Assembly: GCA_001179505.1 (NCBI GenBank)
Contig: CDMY01000751.1
Coordinates: 1-24,219 of the forward strand
DNA length: 24,219 nucleotides
Source of the DNA: Vitrella brassicaformis CCMP3155
Lineage: Eukaryota; Protista; Chromerida
Reading direction: 5' to 3'
Shown here: positions 2,186 to 14,469 of the stretch, piece by piece
Layout: each line of letters opens with the position of its first letter
Numbering within the stretch: position 1 is the first letter of the stretch
Notes under the pieces: generated by a model
The model's input: only the letters and a program-made list of their open reading frames with translations
Databases searched by the model: none
Told to the model about the DNA's origin: nothing
Program-made: the position numbers and the translations under genes

Positions 2186-3213
2186 TCAAGATGCAACCAC
2201 GATTGTTCCCGCACAGGAGCTCTTTCTGCCACTCGTCTGCGCTATATTGTATGCCGTGACGTTCACTCAATCGTTCATTCATTACATTGGAGACCATTAG
2301 TCATTCCTTACTCATTCCCGCCCTTTAGGTCAAACTCATTACTCATGTCCCTGTGTGTCTCCCATGCGTCCCTCCCCTCCCTGCACCGTGGGTCCGCCCG
2401 ACACGGCCAGCTTGCCCGAAAAGGGAGTGTGGTCCGCTTCCACCAACCTCGTATGCGATATCCTGACAAGGTTGTGGAAGCACCGTGGTTGTTGGCTGCT
2501 ATGCGCGCGCGCACCTCATTGAAAGGGTTTCTTGCCGCCTTTTCCTTCTCCTGTATCTTCATCTGTCGCCGCATGAGCCGGTCGCGCCCGCTGATCATCA
2601 TATCGTCCTCGGCAAATATTATTGTGTGCTGCGTGATGCAATGAACGCAGAGAATACAACGCATAAACATGTCCTTGTGGCTCTAGTGCTGCGATGACTG
2701 CACGGGGCGGCCTGCGGTCTTGTCGGGCTCCCAGAGAGCGTACGCCCCCAACAACACCCTACACAGACACACAGGGGAGACACACACGACGCTCCGCTCG
2801 CAGTGCTGCTGGGGCGACGGCGGCGCTCCGACGACAACGAACGCTCAAACGCTTCCTGCTTGACGCTGCATGACAAGGCCGACAGACAGAGATACATACA
2901 CACATACATAGAAGAGGGGTGTGAGTCTTGGCTTACAGAACGGTGAAGCGGTCCTGTCTGGGGCGCGAGACATTTTCCCCACTCCCCCCTCCCCCCTCTG
3001 CTTACCAACACCGACTACGCCCTCCTGACCCTCCTCACCACCCGGGTCTGGCGGTGGCACTGCTGGCCTCGCTCTCTCTGGCGGCGGGGCGGTTTGTGTG
3101 GGGGTGGGTGCTGCTGTTCCCGTTGTGTGTGGGGCGGCTGGGTGGGCTGGGTGGGCTTCTGTGCCCTGCGTGGCGCCTTGGGTGTTGGTGTTGCTATCAT
3201 TGTCTGCATCCAT
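2186..3213 (-). CDS. Probable spliced gene of unknown function with a Pro/Thr/Ala-rich N-terminus; 3' end uncertain
   Basis: MDADNDSNTNTQGATQG...GQEGVVGV ends at a strong GTAAGC donor (~3006). Downstream phase-0 exons HTIIFAEDDMMISGRDRLMRRQMKIQEKEKAARNPFNE and DIAYEVGGSGPHSLFGQAGRVGRTH are bounded by AG/GT. The middle and final exons are ambiguous and no domain was recognised. Confidence 0.45.
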
Positions 3214-3435
3214 CAATCAGGCCACACACACCATATCAACACAACACAATGATATGTGGCCCATGACAAACTGAGACAGCAAGTAGTGTGTGGCAGACAG
3301 GTACATCTATGGCGGATGGATGCTCTTGCAGACGCACGCACCAGCGTATTCGTTCATCGATGGACGTGCTGACTTACACCTAAAGAGTGTCGGTCGACGT
3401 ACGCAAAGAGGACCTCGGATCGATAGGCAGACCTC

Positions 3436-3521
3436 TCGTCCGATCAAATCCACAGACCCAACCGACACACACACGCGCGCACACACACACACAAACCCGA
3501 ACTGCACACCACTTTTTCCTC
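3436..3521. repeat. Direct repeat copy 1 (partner at 4280-4354)
   Basis: TCAAATCCACAGACCCAACCGACAC-(CA-rich)-CCGAACTGCACACCACTTTTTCCT. Confidence 0.85.
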
Positions 3522-3523
3522 AC

Positions 3524-4250
3524 TGAGGTCGAACGGTCACTGCTCCTGCGCCGTCTCCACTTAAATGCACCACGCACTTTGTCAAATGCGCTTGCTGCAG
3601 TCATGAACCGAGGCAAAATGACCACAAAGCACCTCCTTCCAGACTGTGTGTCCTCACCAATGAGTGGCACAACGGTCAGCCAGACGAGCGGGAGCCCCAG
3701 CCACAAAGCATGTCGATAGAGCACGCATCTCTCGCCCACATGTGGCCTCAGCACACGCTCCCACATGTGGTAGCTTTGCAAGACCCCTCCATCCCACGCG
3801 AAAAACGACCCGATCAGCGACGATATCCGGTCGTTCCCGAGGGACTCGTCGAACACGACAAAGGCCAGACCACCCACCTGCACACACACCGTCACAGCAA
3901 AGAGGTTGTGAAAGGTGAGCGCATGTGCCTGCCCATGCCTTCACGTACGGCTGTGATGTGGTAGAGCCCAATTTTGATTAATTGCGACGGCACTTCAGCA
4001 CGGGGAGAGGAAGCAGCCCTGAACACACAACACAGGTACAGATGCGACTGGACGGGTTTGTGCGATAGACACACAGATGCGTGCTGACCTTTCCGCGAGT
4101 GCTGTGAGGATGAAGATGGCCATCAGAGTTGTGACAACGAAAATCACATTGACCACGATAATCTGCCACAGTGCGGCACATGGTTTGCAGGGCCATTCCC
4201 TCGTCATTTCTTGAAGACCTTCACCTCTGGCCACTTGGTGAAAAACCCTG
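3524..4250 (-). pseudogene. Truncated paralog fragment of the gene 3 membrane module (Cys-rich end plus TM1-TM3)
   Basis: Exons ~4250-4089, 4018-3949, 3877-3658, 3594-3524 translate to PCKPCAALWQIIVVNVIFVVTTLMAIFILTALAER / AASSPRAEVPSQLIKIGLYHITA / VGGLAF...FAWDGGVLQSYHMWERVL...LWLGLPLVWLTVVPLI. This aligns to gene 3 TALSQR / SSVLPRAHVHAMLIKIGLYHLTA / VSALAF...FRWNGGV...WECLL...WIALPFVWLTVATLL. No upstream ectodomain or downstream LGFLY module is present. Confidence 0.75.
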
Positions 4251-4279
4251 AATGGTCAGCGCAAACTGATTTTCGTCCA

Positions 4280-4354
4280 TCGTTCGGTCAAAACCACAGA
4301 CCCAACCGACACGACAAACACACACGCAGCCGAACTGCACACCACTTTTCCCTC
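4280..4354. repeat. Direct repeat copy 2 (partner at 3436-3521)
   Basis: TCAAAACCACAGACCCAACCGACAC-(CA-rich)-CCGAACTGCACACCACTTTTCCCT. Confidence 0.85.
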
Positions 4355-4607
4355 GGCACACATACGCTAAGGCAACACCCTACTACCCACTTAATGGAAC
4401 GCACAGCGAGGAGGGACGAAAGGGCCCTACTCGCTCACCCTAAAGGCACATCGACCAAAAATACACGAACAGACTGGCGTACTTAGCAGCTCGCGTTGCA
4501 TCCTTACAGAACGGAAGCACGTGTGCGCGGCAAAACCATACAGGACGGAGAGCCCAAGGACGTACGATGGCAAAGAAGCCACGAAAAAGATCACGCGCAT
4601 TCGCATA

Positions 4608-7600
4608 TCACGCGTCTATACAAGCATGCATACACATATCAGTCAGTCAGTCAGTCAGTTAGTCAGTCACCCGATAGGCGATATAGGCCGTCATTGGCCT
4701 TGTCCGCCTGCCGCGCTGCCCTGAAGGCGGCGTACATGTCCTTCCAGCCAGCACCAGCGTTGATCAGCCGATCCACAACAAAGGCCATGCTACCCTGCAC
4801 CACCCACAGACAGACAGACAGACAGACAGACAGAGATGCGGACCTGATACATACGTGTCCGAACAGATGGGGTACTCTTGGTGCTTGTTTGTAATATTAC
4901 CTGGAAGTCTGTGAATGGGATGCCTTCTCTGGTGACATTGTCGTCGGCGAGCGGCTCCTCCTGGATGGTTTTCATCAGGTCCACAAAGGAAGACGAGCCC
5001 CTGCGCAGTGACGACTTGCCGCCCACCTGCGCACGTACACACGTAAACGGAGGGCAGACGACCGAAGCTGTGGAAACAGAGGTGATAGATACGTGTGTGT
5101 TTGTTGCGTACCCTCAGCTCAAGGGAAGGCAGGAGGACGATCCGCTCGTTGCCCGTCGAGGGGTCACGGATGGTCCTCTTTCTGGCTTTGTGCACCTGAA
5201 AAGTCTGGTGCCAGAGGAACTCCACGAAGTCGCTGGGAATGGCCTGAATCCCCACCTGCTCGATTACCCCTTGCATCGACTCGCTCGTCAGATTCATCAC
5301 CTCAGAACACCAGCGCTTCCGCCGATCGCTCTCCACACGACCCGCCCGCATCGTGTGTGGCGTCGACTTGGACGCTACCGCCGCCAGGCCACGCCACACC
5401 TCCCGCTGCGCGTAGGCAGACCGCCCTGACATGTCCGTTGGCACGGCCGTTGGCGGCTCCCCGAGGTCTGTCGCTGTTGGCTGCTGGCTGGTCTCCATGA
5501 GGCTGGCCGGCAGCGAGTCGAGGGATGCGGGAATTTGGGGGCTCGGTGCCCGATCTGGTGGCAGACTGTCAGCTGCGGGAACGGCGTCCCCTCTCAGAGC
5601 AGAAGGTTGACACGCAGTGGGGAGATGGGGGCCCACCGGAAGTGGCTGTAGCGATCTCGGCTCGTCTGCGAAGGAGGGCGGGAACAGGCAAAGAGCATCC
5701 TCTGGCAGCCGCTGCTCGGGCTCATCGACACTCACATCGTTGTAAGCAGCGGGTGGGGCGCTGCGTGACGTCATGGGCACTGGAAGGGGCAGCGAGGAAG
5801 CAACCACCGCTCCCTCGACGACGCAGCTACGCGATCGTTTGCCTGGTCGACGTGAGCCAGATGTACCCGATGGCGTAGGTGCTGCCCTCTCCTTGCCCCC
5901 GCCATCGCTTGTGTCGATGAGGATAGTGAGCTCACTGCCGCCCGCGTCGAGCCGCACTGTCGGCCCGCGCAATCGCCTCTTGTCCTCCAGGTCTCCGAGC
6001 ATAAAGGCAACGCGACGCATTGCCGCGAAGAGGATGCCGTCTCTCTTCTTCTGTTTCGCCCCTGATTCATCTGGAAGATCCTGGAGCAGGATGGACGTCA
6101 TCAGGAAATCTATGCACACACATATACGCAAGCACGTGACTGATCGGATGCTGTCAACCGAAAGCGGTGGTTTGAGCGGCTGCTGTGTGGTTGCCTCACC
6201 AAGAGAGTGGTGTATGGTGTAATAGAGAAGAGCGATGATGTGGTAAGCGTTGAGCAGCACGATGACGCCCGCCAGCGCAAAGCCAAGCCCCCGCTGCAGC
6301 TGCTGGGGTACATTCGGATGAGCAGCTGTCGACGCGAGAAGCATCAGCGCCCACAGAGAGACGTTCCAAATCAGCAAACCTGAATTGAATCAATCGATGG
6401 ACCATAATGCCGACAAGGTGCCCGCCTACATACCTTGCGCTTCCATCCGGTTGAGGATGTTGAATGATCGGCCGTCGAATGGCCTCAGCCACAGCTGCAG
6501 GATGAGCGATACGCCGGCCACCAGCTGCCAACACACCAGCTGGATCACCTCGTCACCAAGGGACGCGCCTACTTGCGCGATGATAAGGGTGAGTATTCGT
6601 CGCAGCGCAAACACGGCGTCCCAAAAGTAGAAGGATCTCCGGTAGCCGTTGTAGAGGAAGCCGAGGTTCTTGCGCGTCTGCCGGCTGTACAGCCGACCTG
6701 ACCGCTGCTGAGAACGCAAAATAGCCAGTGCTGCGACCACTGGCCCAAAAGACCACACGCACAGCCCCACAACGGCGATGATGGTGAATATGCGGTGTCG
6801 GCCGGTGTAGCAGATGATGGACGGGTCGAGCAGGCTCCGCTCGACAGTGGGGTATGGTTCTTGGAGGAGGGTGCCCAGCTGGGCAGATGGGATGTCGGGA
6901 AAGGTGCGGCAAGGGAGAATCTCCAGCAGCTGACGCGTCACAGCTGCAAAGAAGAGAAGAAAGGATGGTATGTATGTGGGCCATCTCCTCGTCTGTCTAT
7001 CTGTATAGCTCACTTGGATGGATAAATGTGAGGCGCACAATCCACAGCTGAGGCGACACGAAGTACTGCAGCCACCTGTCCTTCCCTCTCCGCCGCCTCT
7101 CGCTGAGGCCGCCCGATTGCGACTGTTGCAGCCCAGAGCTGTCCGTGAAGGGCCATTGGGTGGTGGGCTGCTCCTGCTGACGTGGATCTCGCTCGTCCTC
7201 TGTGTCGGATTTGATGGCGCCTGGGCAGCACAGCTGCGACAGGCTAGAGGCCTTGCAGTGGAGAGTCAGAATTTGCCATAGACCCCACAGCAGAGTGGCG
7301 ACGGTCAGCCTGTGAAAGGACAGACAGCAATGAAGACGTGAATGACACCAACCAAGGAATACACATGATTCGAGCTGCGCCCCCGCCTCTGACTCACCAG
7401 ACAAACGGGAGTGCAATCCACGCGGCCCTCCTGGCCAGCATCGCGTCGGTGCCCCGCATACCGCCGTCCTTCAGAAGACACTCCCAACTGAACCAAACAC
7501 CCCCACCAACATACGAGAAGCTGCCTGCCTGTAGTCGTTTCCACAGCCTTGCTTACGTGACGTCTGCCGTCGGCACCCCACCTGCACCAACACACATGAC

Positions 7601-10600
7601 GGCATGCAAACGATGCAGCCGGTAGCCTTGCTTTCAGTGTGCTGCGCACACTTACCGTTCCATCGAAAAGCGCCCCTGAGCACTTCGATGGCCTCCGGCG
7701 GCAGCATGCGGGAAAAGTGGAGGCTTAAGAACGCCAGGGCACTAACCTGTGCGCACAGTGATAAACACACGCACAGGCGGATCTACTTGCGTCCTTGCTC
7801 GCTGTCCGACTGGGTGAGTCACTGACCGCTGTGAGATGGTATAGACCTGTGTGAGTGACACAGACAGACAGACAGACAGGAGAATCTGGCTGGCGGCTTT
7901 CCTGCCCTTTCGGTGTCTTTCCTTGCCCACCAATCTTGATTAGCATCGCGTGCACGTGGGCTCGTGGCAACACAGATGACCTACGCACACAAAACAAAAC
8001 ACACGCATGCAGCCACACAGCAGAGCAGTCAAGTCGGCCGTGTGTGTGTGGCGATCAGCGGGCGCACCTCTGCGAGAGTGCAGTGGCAACAAAGATCACG
8101 ATCAAGACGATAAAATACAGCACGATGGCGGACGTGATGTTCAATGCGTGGTTGTCACACCTCCTGCACAATCCGGAGAGCGTACCCACACTGCGCCACT
8201 TCTTGTCGCAGCTGCCGCACAGCGGCCCCGTGTGGCCCTCCTGGTCGATGAACAAAACAAGCACACAACACCAGTGCGGCTGCCTGTCGCATCCACCGGC
8301 CTTCTTGGTGTGTATGGTGCCATGTTCGTACTCTGCATTTGTTGAGCTTCGTGACGATCTGTGTGGTTTCGTCCCAGTCCGACCCCTCACACGCCTCGGG
8401 GACAGGACACCGGACCATCACCGGACGAGGGGTCACACGGGCGTCGTACCTGCAGGCACATAACACATCCGTGAGAAAGGCAGCCATGGCTACAATCCGC
8501 GCTTGCCTACGTCGATATCGGTAACGCCAGCTGTCGGTAGGTGACGTTCGTGCGAGGATCCACAAATATTGACGGCAACGTCAGCTCACCAGCCACATCT
8601 TCACTGCCGATCGCCGACAGCCGCTCAGCCAACACACTGGTCGTACGATTTTCATTCCCGGCCGTGTATTCCGACAGAGGGATGCCGCGCACAAGATAGG
8701 GGTGGCCCAGCAACAGAGGTTGGTCGCTGTCATTGGCCAGAGGGAGGACCGTGATACCCGCCTCATCGCGCCACATCTCCAGTTCCATGATGGCGCCGTG
8801 GTGATTGCAGACCTCTTTTGAGAGCGCCTCTATCGAGCTGGCCGCCAGCACTGGTACGAGTAGGGGCACCTCCATGTCCAGCTCGTACCAGCCCGGCTGC
8901 ACCAGAAACGCACGCTGAGAGTCGGTGACCTGCATGCCGTCGGTGCTGTTGGCGGCCGCATCGGTCCCGTTGCCATGTGTGTCGCAGGCGCCTGAGCGGT
9001 TCGTCTGTGGCATCGATCTGAAGCTCTCCTCTGGAAGCAGGAAGCACTCCCTTTCCACATGGTCGCTGTGAACAAAAGAAGCGAAGAATGAGAACAGAAC
9101 TGACAGCGCATTGTCATTCCTGCTTACATTGCGTATGGTGCTTCGCAATAGCAGTCTGTTCGTGATGTGCTGCCGATTGGTGATGTAACATGGACACCAG
9201 GACAGCGTTCACACCGTACGCTGTCGCTCCGAACCGTCTTGTAAGTGCCTGAACGACGACAGAAGGTGAGCATTGCATGCTACACAAGTCATCATCAGAG
9301 TTCTTCTGTCTACCTGCTGGACATGGGACGCATACGTTATCCTTGTATTCATATCCCCTATCGCAAGCTGAGCAGGCCGTACCATTATTCATTTCAACTG
9401 CACCACACAACTCATATCATATCACACAGGGAATAACAGAGGATATCAAAAATTGCTCGACTACTTACCCCGGCCAACAGGGCATGCCTGACACTTCTCA
9501 ATGCCCTGAGCATGTATCGTCACTGTGCCAGACGGGCATTTGGTGCAGTTCAGCCCTCTCCCCTCCCATCCATCCTTGCAGCGACACAATACATCAGCAT
9601 TTGCTGTTGGATCTGCCTGAATGGACAGAACATATGAGTAACAGCAAAAAGCAGCATGCAGTTTCTTCTTTCCCTCTTACATACATATACACTCCCACGG
9701 CATTTCTACATATGTTCGTGCACTCCACGGACGGATGCACCTCCCATAAAAGGTCCTCATCAGACTCGACTTCCAAAAGTGGCGTAGAATTATGCCACTC
9801 GCTATACGGTCCGTAATCTACACATACACATACACATACACATACACAAACACACAATCACCGAGCACATCGCTAACATCAAAATCCTGAAGCTCCTTTT
9901 GGATCTCTCACCATCACGATCAGCAACAAGCTGGGCTTCCAGTCCTGATTTTGAGCTTGCTTCTATGTGGGCTGAGCAAGGTTCACCGTTGTGTGGCAGT
10001 ACCTGCGAAGGAAGGAGGCACCATGTATCGGATAGAGAGTACTCTAAACATTCTACGCACCTGAAGCCTCAGATTTTTGTTGTATTCAAGAGATAGTCCA
10101 AGCTGAAGGTGACACTTACAATCCTTGTACCTGAACAAAAACCGAGCATACATCTTAACGCGCATAGGGACGTGAAAAAAGGGCATACCATCCATCGTGG
10201 ATGCCCTCAATCTCATTGAATCCCAGATAAAGGAATTGCAATGCCTCGAATCCCGTTTGCGCCCTCAGATTGATGTCGGGATACAGGTCATCGACCGTCA
10301 CAGAATAATCCAGCTTCTCTACATCAATAGGCAGATCAGAATCATCAGCGACACTCTCATCCGCCGACTCCACTGCAGGCGGCCCATCATCGTTGCCCAC
10401 GACCATGCTCATACTCGTGGCGTTCATCTGCAGCCGATAAGCCGCCATAAACGAGCCCTTGTAGCGCCTGAATGCGGGCGTGTTGAGGAGCCCAGCATTG
10501 AGAACATGCTCTAAGTCAAAAATGGTCATCGCATCTGCCGTCAAAGAGCCGTGAAGGCCGTTGACATCACCATCTAAGAGCTGCAGAGAGCTTTGCCACC

Positions 10601-12942
10601 TCCAGGGCATCAGGAACTCGTCTACAGTCGTATTATAGCCGTTTCTGTCGAGATGTAGGACCTGAAGCTGTGGCCAGTAGGGAGGCGGATTGGACAGGAT
10701 TTCAGCTACGATGCGAGCACTCAGAGCTGACAAGACAAGTCATAGTTTTATGAATTCACCAGGAAGGCCACCGACCTTACTTGTTCCAGCGCGAAGACCA
10801 GATGAATGCACTCCCCATTTGAGCGGCTCTAGACGATTACCGGAAATCCACAGTTCCATCACTGATAAACGAAAACAACAGGAGGGCACGAGTACCGTAT
10901 GTGTAAGTGTGTGTGTGTGTGTGTGTGCGCGTCTATATAGCTCACTTACGGTTGTCTAGACGTCTCCACCCTGAAGGGATGCGCAAAAGGCGATTGTTTT
11001 GGAGCATCAGTTCCTCCAGCCTAGACGCATCATGACGGTATGAATGTTGACGCACAAGTAAATCGATTATAGTGCTGACGTACTTATAAGGCATGCGCCA
11101 ATCACCCTCAAAATCATGAAAGCCATTTTCATGGAGCCACAACTGTCTCAGAGTATCCATGTGGCTCAGCCACGCCGGAAGAAGGCCTGTGAGTCGATTG
11201 CGTGACAGATCTATGCCCCACACATGCTGGAGATCCTCGAGTGTTGCAGGCAGCTTGTCAACACTGAAAGGAAGATATATAGATACAGCGATCCGTCGCA
11301 CTCTCTGTCTTCCAGTGACCGACCTTGTTCTAGTGATTCGGAGTGAGCGAAGCCCGGAGAGCATATTGAGAGAATCAGGAATAGGACCATAAATGCCCTG
11401 CACATCATGGACACATGCACCAAAAAGGACAACACGCTGTACGATCAGGTCATTTATGTACCTTGCTGTTAGAAATTCTCAGCTCTCGCAGAGAAGTGGC
11501 GTTGCCGTATGCGGCCGGAATGGTGCCTGTGACGTTCTCACAGTCCTTCAGTAAAAATGTGTGGATCTTCGGCAAATTCCACAGAGCCGGCAGCCCGCCC
11601 CTTACGGCCGTGCCAACCATCTGAAACTCCTCGAGCGAGCCACAGTGTTCAAATGCCCCCACAAGTGAAGCCGTAATGTTCTCGCCGTATAGGCTCACTA
11701 TCCGCAGGGTGGTGCATTGAGGGGAAGGGGCGGTTGCAGACGAATTGGCGCCCTGTCCGTGGAAGAGTGAGTGCATGGTGAAGGCCAGTGGGTTGCGAAC
11801 AAGGCTGAGGGCCTCAAGCGACTTGCCGAATATCGTGTGGAAGGATGGTGGCAGGGTGCCCTCCAGCTGTGTGTCGTCTCAGTAAAGCCCCCGGAGATCG
11901 GGCAGGCTGACGATTTCCTCAGGCAATTGGCCGCTCAGACTAACCTGAGATACCCCAGGCAGCCATCAGGAGAAGACAAGAAAGATTGAGCGGCTCGCCT
12001 ATCCTACCAGCTGTATCATTCATTCACCTTGTCCATCTAGAGCAGTCTCAGCTGTGTCATTTCGCCGATTCTCTCAGATAGCCTGCCGTACAGGGGGACA
12101 TTCCACAGCGCGACGCCGAGCAGTCCCTTCAGGTCGTAGAAGGATGCATGTAGCTCCACGCCTCCAGGAGGAAAGATAAGATGGTCAGCGTCCAGCACCA
12201 TAATGTAGCCGTCCACCATCCCATCGCCCCCTCCCACCCATTCGCCCATCGCACCCCTCGTTGAAGGCCCCTTGCGCCCCGTCCGGAAGCGAATGCACAC
12301 GATGAAAGGCAGATCGCACACGCGGAAGACCGCCGCAGCCGCACCCCCTCTCATCTCGATGTTCAGTGAGCGAATGAATTCCCTCAGTGGCCCTCGGGCG
12401 TCATCCTCACACACCATGCAGTCCTCATTTATGATGCCCACTGTCCCATTAGTCTTGTTTGCAGCACTGAAGCCTGCCAGCCCACGCATCGATGTGCGGG
12501 GCATCACGCGCTCCACACCGAATGGCCGACCGACCCCGAATGGCCGGTAACTATGAAGCAGTTGCAGCTTCGCCACAGGTGATATGGCATGGTCGCGCTG
12601 CGGTGATGTACTGGTCGAGATCGCGGGAGTGTCCGCTGAGACTCTGAACCAGTCGCTGCATTGGTGTAGCATATCTGTCTCAGCCGACACGCCATCAGCC
12701 ACATCTCGCGTCAATCCATCGGTAGTCTCAGCGACCTGCAGCTGGCGGGAGGCGGCCGCCAGTGGATGCGATGGATCGCAGCGGCAAGGCTTGTCACACT
12801 GATCTTCCACAGTCGAGGTGCCTGTCGGAGCTGGTCTTCCATCCACTTCACCAGAAGCGAGACCAAGGACGAGGAAGAGTCCAATGCAGAATCTCAACAA
12901 TGAGAGCCGCCGCCGTCTTCGATGCGAGTCACATCGTGCCAT
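4608..12942 (-). CDS. ~2114-codon LRR / EGF / GCC2-GCC3 / ~9-TM receptor-like gene containing two in-frame stops (possible young pseudogene or recoded gene)
   Basis: 28 GT-AG exons with consistent phase: 12942-12028, 11944-11462, 11397-11324, 11263-11084, 11020-10950, 10861-10781, 10726-10189, 10130-10061, 10002-9912, 9817-9693, 9616-9469, 9397-9314, 9248-9128, 9065-8511, 8449-8332, 8240-8068, 7980-7931, 7846-7827, 7746-7656, 7581-7557, 7487-7398, 7309-7014, 6943-6434, 6379-6200, 6109-5112, 5026-4901, 4794-4671, 4615-4608. Signal-like N-terminus LSLLRFCIGLFLVLGLASG (an upstream in-frame ATG exists at 13008). Hallmark motifs: EGHTGPLCGSC, LGFLYNGYRRSFYFWDAVFALRR, RPFDGRSFNILNRME. Confidence 0.85.
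4806..4833. repeat. (CAGA)n microsatellite in a gene 3 intron; representative of many CA/GT, CAGA, CT and TACACA tracts (e.g. ~594-616, ~9819-9850, ~20114-20140, ~22132-22175)
   Basis: Direct reading of the sequence. Confidence 0.9.
6215..8145 (-). other. ~9-helix TM module of gene 3, resembling the protist 'GPCR-related' / TRP_C (fungal Flc/Pkd2-like) membrane domain
   Basis: Nine hydrophobic segments plus the family-type motifs WECL, IHPTVT, DPSIICY, LGFLYNGY..FYFWD.V..LRR and RPF....N..E. Family assignment is from motif recall, not a database search. Confidence 0.7.
9135..9740 (-). other. EGF-like module followed by GCC2/GCC3 (ephrin-receptor-like) Cys-rich repeats of gene 3
   Basis: LCRCKDGWEGRGLNC; CTKCPSGT..KCQACPVG; CVPCPAGTYKTVRSDSVRCERCPGVHVTSPIGSTSRTDCYC. 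Confidence 0.75.
10040..12123 (-). other. LRR ectodomain of gene 3 (~15-17 repeats, many with the plant-type LxxLxLxxNxLxGxLP consensus)
   Basis: Examples: LRELRISNSKGIYGPIPDSLNMLSG, VWGIDLSRNRLTGLLPAWLSHMDT, LRQLWLHENGF, LEELMLQNNRLLRIP, LQFLYLGFNEIEGI. Confidence 0.85.
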
Positions 12943-14469
12943 GGGTGGCGCATCACATATCAGTCGTGGCACACTGACTTGGGTCCCGATCTTGCCCAGC
13001 TGGCGCATCTTTCAGCTCGCAGAGCTTCTGGATGATGGGTGGTCAACGTGTCTGCATGGACAGATGGGATCTACACAGACAGGCACAGAATCGCCGGGTG
13101 ACTGAGTGAGCCACACACACAATACCGCACAGGCAGGCATCTTGCCAGATCTCTGCATTCGTATTGGCTGTCCTTTGTTCTCTGTGCAGGCGGGGCTCTG
13201 TGTGTGTGAACGATACGCAGAGCTGGGGTGTTCCGCAAAGTTGACGAATGCATAATCTGTCTGCGCGTGGGGAAGCACACATGCACAAGTACACGAGGAG
13301 GCGTGCGTCAGTCGCGTGTGGTCTTATCTTGTTCGTGTATGTCAGTCAGGACGTTTCTGTCGATGCTGGCGGTCGGGGCGAGTGCAGGAGGGTTGCTCGC
13401 TTCACGCGCATGCGCGCCCCAGATCTTGCTTGGACACAGGTCAGTAGGCAACGAGAGAGAATAGTGGAATTCGTTCTCGCCTCGGCCTATATTATTCTCT
13501 CTCGGTCTATGTATTGTTATGTACAGCGAGCGGGCAGGACGAAGGACCACCTGGCCGGCTGCCCCACACCCGGTGTGGACGTGCGTGCCCACACGAGGAG
13601 CTCTCATAGATTCTTGGACGTGTGTAGGAATGTCAGACAGCGAAGATTGGTACGTCCATACAGTGCGTAGCTCTGTCCACACACGAAGACACAAACCCCA
13701 TGAGTGCAGTGCTGCGATTCGTTCCTCGTCTGTGCCCGTGAGAGGCTCCCATGTTGGAGAAGGTACACATACATAGGTACACACGCACCGTCTCCCACTG
13801 GGCCACAGACACACAGAAATTCACTTGTGCGTATCATCGCCTCCTGCAGGTGATTTGGATGGATGTGGCCCTTGCGTTGCCCCTATCCATGGCCACCATG
13901 ACGCATCTCATCGACCACTATGTATGTACACACACGCCCATCCATAATGAGCACGCAGACATACCCGTACCCGCCCATCTGTGTGCATACCCTTGCTTCT
14001 CCGTGTGCAGGTGTTGTCAACGCTTTGCCCGTTTTGGATCGGTTCCGATAGAAGCGCGCCAGAGACGCTGACAGCGAGGAAGTACTGACGCCGCACGCAC
14101 GCACATGCCACCTTGCCCACAAACAGATCCATTTGTGTCTCTGTCAGTTGCCGCCGTCTGTGTCTCTGTCTGCATGGCGATGGACAGATAGGGGAGATTG
14201 GTCGTCTGGCGCGGACTCATGTTTCTGCGTGTTGAACGTGGTGGGTGGCGGTGGGTCTAGCGTGCGCGGCCGAAGTAGGTGCGTTTTTGGGCTGGGCTGA
14301 AATGCGTGTGCGCGGGGAGGAAGATTGAGTTATATGTATGCTGGACTCCTCATCCAGACGCGCACTCTCTCTCTCTCTCTCTTTCGCCCTTCCCTCATCC
14401 GTCCATATGCAGTCGATAAGCAACTCACTGACACACTGATGCATTCCACTGAGTAGTGTGAGTGACACA

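Follow-up and report, generated by a model that had tools for sequence, protein, structure and literature searches.

A minus-strand gene in a 24,219-nucleotide (nt) stretch of the Vitrella brassicaformis CCMP3155 genome (assembly GCA_001179505.1, contig CDMY01000751.1, positions 1 to 24,219; the whole stretch is called the window here) carries two premature stop codons, TAG at codon 302 and TGA at codon 327, in a reading frame that is otherwise intact. The gene is one member of a small V. brassicaformis family of very large membrane proteins. Its four close paralogs have Tyr in place of the TAG, and Leu or Val in place of the TGA. From these genomic comparisons, the window gene is very probably a young unprocessed (duplicated) pseudogene or null copy. 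Because the stops stand at Tyr and Leu sites and damage is also seen in two of its four nearest sister copies, an inactivated copy is favoured over a gene switched by RNA editing.

Two premature stop codons in an otherwise intact gene

The 26-exon structure of the paralog CEM20038.1, which is known exactly, served as the template for the gene model and was transferred to the window through a MAFFT alignment of five family copies, followed by corrections where the window clade departs from it. The rebuilt gene runs from 12942 to 4663 and is composed of 27 exons with a summed length of 6357 nt, giving 2118 codons and a terminal TGA (4665-4663). All introns (26/26) are of the GT-AG type and 54 to 106 nt long, the phase is kept at every junction, and the splice dinucleotides are intact (52/52). 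A check of the frame of each exon and of the codons at each junction showed no frameshift or splice-site loss in the window gene.

Internal stops are limited to the TAG (12037-12039), which is located four codons from the end of exon 1, and the TGA (11879-11881), which is codon 22 of exon 2 and occupies the consensus Leu of a leucine-rich repeat (LRR). The minus strand reads CTG CTC TAG ATG GAC AAG at the first stop, followed by the donor gtgaat, and continues past intron 1 (...tctcag) with GTT AGT CTG ... CTT TAC TGA GAC GAC. The two stops are 158 bp and one LRR unit apart and flank intron 1, which has the same boundaries with exons 1 and 2 in each of the five family copies (alignment A1). 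These positions and codon numbers reproduce those of the first-pass annotation, which had been made from the letters of the window and had also described an otherwise intact gene of about 2100 codons with no frameshift, a TGA at a consensus Leu position and a G as the 5' neighbour of the A in that TGA. All of this agrees with our model and alignment, the exon count being corrected from 28 to 27.

The codon aligned with the TAG is TAC, TAC, TAC and TAT in the four paralogs, all encoding Tyr, and the codon aligned with the TGA is TTA, TTG, GTA and TTG, encoding Leu or Val (alignment A1). The stops therefore arose by C>G and T>G changes and not from Trp codons. Using C520a (see below) as the outgroup, both TAC>TAG and TTA>TGA are polarised to the window's own branch.

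We infer that the copy has lost its function, having probably been knocked out lately by two single-base substitutions, one of which turned a Tyr codon into a stop (TAC>TAG) and the other a Leu codon (TTA>TGA). Translation would stop at codon 302, and an mRNA with 26 introns downstream of the TAG would be an expected target of nonsense-mediated decay.

Paralogs and state of the family

The genome (72,700,666 bases in 1064 contigs) was searched for further copies, and four close paralogs were found, one on contig C671 and three, named C520a, C520b and C520c, on contig C520. The closest one, C671, with about 92% identity near the stops and 84% across window positions 8505-13004, is broken and truncated. 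It shows a 1-bp deletion in exon 1 (alignment A2), an AG>GG change in the exon 5 acceptor and 23 additional nt in exon 9, and its homology ends at C671:919, from where tandem repeats extend to the contig end. C520a, with 71% identity across the whole gene, is broken twice, by a TGG>TGA change in exon 4 (FEGD-stop-R versus FEGDWR in the other copies) and by the loss of 1 bp from exon 14. For C520c (61% protein identity in exon 1), the frame is kept through exon 11, whereas the 3' half, starting from C520b exon 12, aligns poorly.

Among the four paralogs, the intact state is shown for C520b only (65% protein identity in exon 1), which encodes CEM20038.1 (P0002; 2247 amino acids [aa]; C520:143015-151828), a protein retrieved by a protein-representative search with the TRP-like exon. 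It maps exactly on its own DNA with 26 exons and has no internal stop; of its 25 introns, a single one is GC-AG and the other 24 are GT-AG. CEM20038.1 shares with the window gene the LRR_8, Ephrin_rec_like, DUF7630 and TRP (Pfam ID PF06011) matches, most intron positions and an identity of 62-82% per exon, whereas it differs by its 26 exons and the absence of internal stops from the window copy with its 27 exons and two stops.

The broken sister copies represent the usual birth-and-death pattern of a receptor family. The window copy has the features of unprocessed pseudogenes in such families, namely, a recent paralog, intact introns, stops at conserved sense codons and two sister copies with independent lesions of their own; the homology to a functional paralog extends to the kept introns, and the disabling changes are at positions where the relatives have sense codons. 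It would be a very young example, having only two nonsense changes, no frameshift, a branch ratio of non-synonymous to synonymous substitution rates (dN/dS, omega) still at 0.46, and a 3' part that is apparently transcribed. Vitrella thus has a small, actively turning-over family of giant membrane proteins combining LRRs with a TRP-like domain, with copies at different stages of decay, which is of modest interest for the evolution of surface receptors in free-living relatives of apicomplexans.

Public annotation and signs of expression

The public protein of the locus is CEM32410.1 (P0151; UniRef A0A0G4GPV7), with 2029 aa. Its start ATG is located inside intron 1, and residues 1-7 (MAAWGIS) map exactly to 11966-11946. 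A 67-nt "intron" then removes the TGA, using as donor GT the first two bases of the conserved exon 2 and a weak acceptor that scores -0.5 on the splice matrix described below. At the other end, the model overruns the stop at 4665-4663 into open reading frames (ORFs) at about 3900-2900 (region 2926-4669). CEM32410.1 is wrong at both ends, an annotation artefact that hides both stops, and the value of this analysis is mainly for curation. That the model obtains an open frame only through a start within intron 1 and an invented intron across the TGA is in line with an inactivated copy. Gene models of the Vitrella project were generated with Augustus and RNA-seq hints (PMC4501334).

A second protein record, P0001 (JGI/IMG; 663 aa, beginning with Val), corresponds exactly to 7059..4666 once five introns are spliced out, and it ends at the true stop. 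P0001 would most simply be an ORF, partial at its 5' end, that derives from a spliced transcript. Apart from P0151 itself, P0001 is the sole member of the 90% cluster of CEM32410.1. Database searches were run with single exons of the window gene, one at a time. The piece of exon 2 after the TGA (139 aa) had no match in the protein collection within the search length limits, and a scan of metagenome contigs with this piece and with P0001 gave no match in a collection that may lack the records of this genome. No RNA-derived ORF covering exon 1 or exon 2 turned up within these length limits.

Age and selective constraint

The window gene and C671 differ with a synonymous divergence (dS) of 0.185. 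The tract 12400-12001 is 96-98% identical between the two copies, falling to about 85% further on, and both stops lie inside a tract of 93-98% identity. The 200-nt interval with the TAG has only four substitutions, this stop included, which indicates that the TAG is recent; the TGA is found in the next interval, with 14 substitutions. The similarity to C671 continues upstream of the gene (window 13042-13677), being 95% over 417 bp, followed by 220 bp that match in inverted orientation with 85% identity, so the duplication or conversion tract takes in the promoter region and a small inversion.

The branch omega is 0.46 for the window copy and 0.55 for C671, compared with a deep family baseline of 0.30-0.38. 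The dN/dS downstream of the stops is 0.51 on the window branch (38.5 synonymous and 63.5 non-synonymous changes) and lies above the baseline, suggesting that the constraint there is somewhat relaxed. An omega above the family baseline and significantly below 1 is compatible with a very recent inactivation, without proving it.

Several observations weigh against a dead copy. The omega of 0.46 on the window branch is well under 1 (P = 1e-5), so the copy has been under selection for most of its history. Judging from P0001, transcription and correct splicing seem to take place over at least the 3' third of the locus. Two nonsense changes with no frameshift in 6.3 kb are somewhat odd, and stops placed at random would lie as close as 25 codons in only about 2% of cases (2x25/2118).

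Alternative explanations for the two stops

We consider it unlikely that the copy is still alive, either through a short secreted N-terminal protein or through removal or recoding of both stops at the RNA level in some life stage. If true, such a short secreted form or conditional receptor would be the first for a chromerid.

In the first of these scenarios, which we regard as quite improbable, the TAG yields a secreted N-terminal domain, about 280 aa long once the signal peptide is cleaved off, that is kept under selection while the remainder decays. The start codon and the signal peptide are intact. On the window branch, the part of the gene before the TAG has an omega of 0.21 (13 synonymous and 8 non-synonymous changes) versus the 0.51 found downstream, with a deep baseline of about 0.35 in both parts. 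The lower value upstream hints weakly at a constraint that persists in the N-terminal part only, although the counts are small, the contrast is borderline (Fisher P = 0.051) and the 5' tract seems to be homogenised with C671, which distorts the branch counts. Moreover, a stop with 26 introns behind it should trigger mRNA decay. The N-terminal domain of exon 1 has no Pfam family match, and a word search of the protein collection with exon 1 (323 aa) returned the window's own ORF as the sole match.

Alternative splicing could drop both stops, for example by joining 12092 to 11804, an in-frame event that removes 68 codons and leaves a receptor without two to three LRRs. In-frame GT...AG pairs are present, as is expected by chance within 400 nt. 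We scored the sites with a position-weight matrix for which 51 real introns from the family were used. The conserved intron 1 sites are intact and strong, the donor (7.8) and the acceptor (9.9) both being typical of real sites, whereas all donors upstream of the TAG score at most 2.8, below the weakest of the 51 real donors (3.2). In-frame partner acceptors reach at most 2.5, except for 11752 (5.8), whose partner donors score at most 1.2. The first-pass annotation had suggested a splice from the 12027 donor to an AG at about 11868. This event is in frame and removes the TGA only, so that the TAG stays, and its acceptor scores 0.6 versus 9.9 for the conserved one. At the acceptor of intron 1, the window and C671 alone have CAG/GTTAGT (window 11939-11950), and the donor-like AAG/GTTAGT that splicing recreates there counts in favour of this scenario. 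Taken together, we see very little chance that both stops are spliced out.

The AAG/GTTAGT regenerated by splicing of intron 1 resembles a recursive splice site, and the donor used by the public model is the same GT.

An assembly or sequencing error, with sense codons as the true state at both sites, had been ranked in the first-pass annotation, together with recent pseudogenisation, as at least as likely as editing. The scaffold is short (24 kb) and the family is multi-copy, features that would favour such an error. However, an Illumina-type consensus is unlikely to contain two independent stop-making errors less than 160 bp apart, and the copy-specific substitutions are scattered along the whole gene. 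A consensus mixed from paralogs is ruled out as the source of the stops, since none of the paralogs has a G at either site. We therefore give an error a very low probability, and it is the other proposal, recent pseudogenisation, that is supported by the sense, non-Trp codons in all paralogs, the broken sister copies and the absence of rescue signals.

The remaining possibility is a rescue at the level of RNA or translation, in which a conditional full-length protein would arise by programmed readthrough or by adenosine-to-inosine (A-to-I) editing that turns UAG and UGA into UGG. The window gene resembles the known cases in ascomycetes (PUK1 and AMD1, Fusarium graminearum; PMC4817773, PMC5496914, PMC11156358) in having two close stops in an otherwise intact ORF, each one A>G change away from TGG. 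In PUK1, a tandem UAG UAG is restored to UGG (PMC4817773). Fungal stop-correcting editing has a preference for hairpin loops and for a U at position -1 (PMC11156358), and such a U does precede the A of the window's TAG. The window differs, however, by a UGA with G at -1, by the lack of a stable hairpin and by the ancestral Tyr and Leu, and its host is a chromerid, an alveolate alga, and not an ascomycete. The 61-nt contexts of the stops are not more stable than their shuffles (z = +0.82 for the TAG and +1.23 for the TGA). The +4 contexts are UAG-A and UGA-G, a purine at both stops. A purine at +4 favours termination. To our knowledge, no nuclear stop-correcting editing has been described in chromerids.

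Fungal-type editing was rejected on the residue, as UGG would place Trp at a Tyr site and at a core LRR Leu. Programmed readthrough was rejected on its context, given the purines at +4, no structure beyond that of the shuffles and no Rfam element. The idea put forward at first pass, that editing or readthrough works as an on/off switch, is not supported, given the Tyr and Leu/Val of the relatives, the missing hairpin, the +4 purines and the G context of the TGA, and we regard a rescue of this kind as extremely unlikely. The locus gives no evidence of a new recoding mechanism.

Two further recoding candidates were discarded. Selenocysteine recoding does not fit, as the UGA aligns with Leu/Val, a scan of the window with Rfam shows no selenocysteine insertion sequence (SECIS) or other Rfam element, and the TAG would stay unexplained. 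A variant nuclear code was rejected with 2 internal stops in 2118 codons here and 0 in 2247 in the intact paralog; TGA also terminates the window gene itself, as in the independent product P0001.

The encoded protein

The Pfam matches of the window gene are LRR_8/LRR_4, Ephrin_rec_like, DUF7630 and a segment of the TRP-like family (Pfam ID PF06011). LRR_8 scores 51.5 bits (cut-off 27) and Ephrin_rec_like 40.5 bits (cut-off 23.1). The exon at 6943-6434 matches positions 235-350 of PF06011 with 32.6 bits (cut-off 28.5), whereas the whole annotated protein stays under this cut-off with 22.2 bits. The N-terminus of exon 1 resembles a signal peptide (MARCDSHRRRRRLSLL...). The protein is thus predicted to have a large LRR and Cys-rich ectodomain, joined to a TRP-like domain that crosses the membrane several times, and a long tail. 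The match in exon 6943-6434 relates it to the TRP-like/FLC family, from which it differs in matching part of the profile only, and we know of no description of a huge LRR and Cys-rich ectodomain as a feature of this family.

Gene structure and minor observations

The features of the locus are collected in Table 1. An in-frame ATG at 13008, upstream of the exon 1 start, is not present in the C671 copy. Relative to C520b, the window gene has two additional in-frame introns at 7556-7488 (69 nt) and 6199-6110 (90 nt), at least the former being also present in C520a. The intron separating exons 21 and 22 of C520b is missing in the window gene, where the exons are fused (site 7286-7309), and exons 8-9 are shorter than in CEM20038.1.

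Table 1. Features of the window gene and of its public model (window coordinates; exons from the projected model)
Feature	Position	Strand	Remarks
Exon 1	12028-12942	-	Begins at the ATG of MARCDSHRRRRR...; signal peptide
Premature stop 1, TAG	12037-12039	-	Codon 302; four codons from end of exon 1
Intron 1	11945-12027	-	83 nt; GTGAAT...CAG; exact intron in CEM20038.1
CEM32410.1 start ATG	11964-11966	-	Inside intron 1
Exon 2	11462-11944	-	483 nt; equal length in 5/5 copies; contains LRRs and the TGA
CEM32410.1 67-nt "intron"	11878-11944	-	Removes the TGA
Premature stop 2, TGA	11879-11881	-	Codon 327; exon 2 codon 22; consensus Leu of an LRR
Exon 3	11324-11397	-	
Exon 4	11084-11263	-	
Exon 5	10950-11020	-	
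Exon 6	10781-10861	-	
Exon 7	10189-10726	-	
Exon 8	10061-10130	-	
Exon 9	9912-10002	-	
Exon 10	9681-9817	-	
Exon 11	9469-9616	-	
Exon 12	9314-9397	-	
Exon 13	9128-9248	-	
Exon 14	8511-9065	-	
Exon 15	8332-8449	-	
Exon 16	8068-8240	-	
Exon 17	7931-7980	-	
Exon 18	7827-7846	-	
Exon 19	7656-7746	-	
Exon 20	7557-7581	-	
Exon 21	7398-7487	-	
Exon 22	7014-7309	-	
Exon 23	6434-6943	-	
Exon 24	6200-6379	-	
Exon 25	5112-6109	-	
Exon 26	4901-5026	-	
Exon 27	4663-4794	-	

Intron turnover is seen within the family at the three sites described above (window 7488-7556, 6110-6199 and 7286-7309). In intron 9 (window 9818-9870), a (TGTGTA)n microsatellite is longer in the window than in C671 and C520a. The repeat block at C671 1-918 matches itself at offsets of 60-140 nt with 75-80% identity.

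The lesions of C520a map to C520:103408-103587 and C520:100822-101333. The 3' end of its exon 14 is nearly identical to that of C520b, which suggests gene conversion inside the C520 cluster.

Downstream of the window gene, the minus strand at 3662-3805 shows 37-45% identity to family exons 19-20 (P0002 1391-1439 and P0003 1282-1332). A piece of a further family copy, or else a small gene next to the window gene, could account for this stretch.

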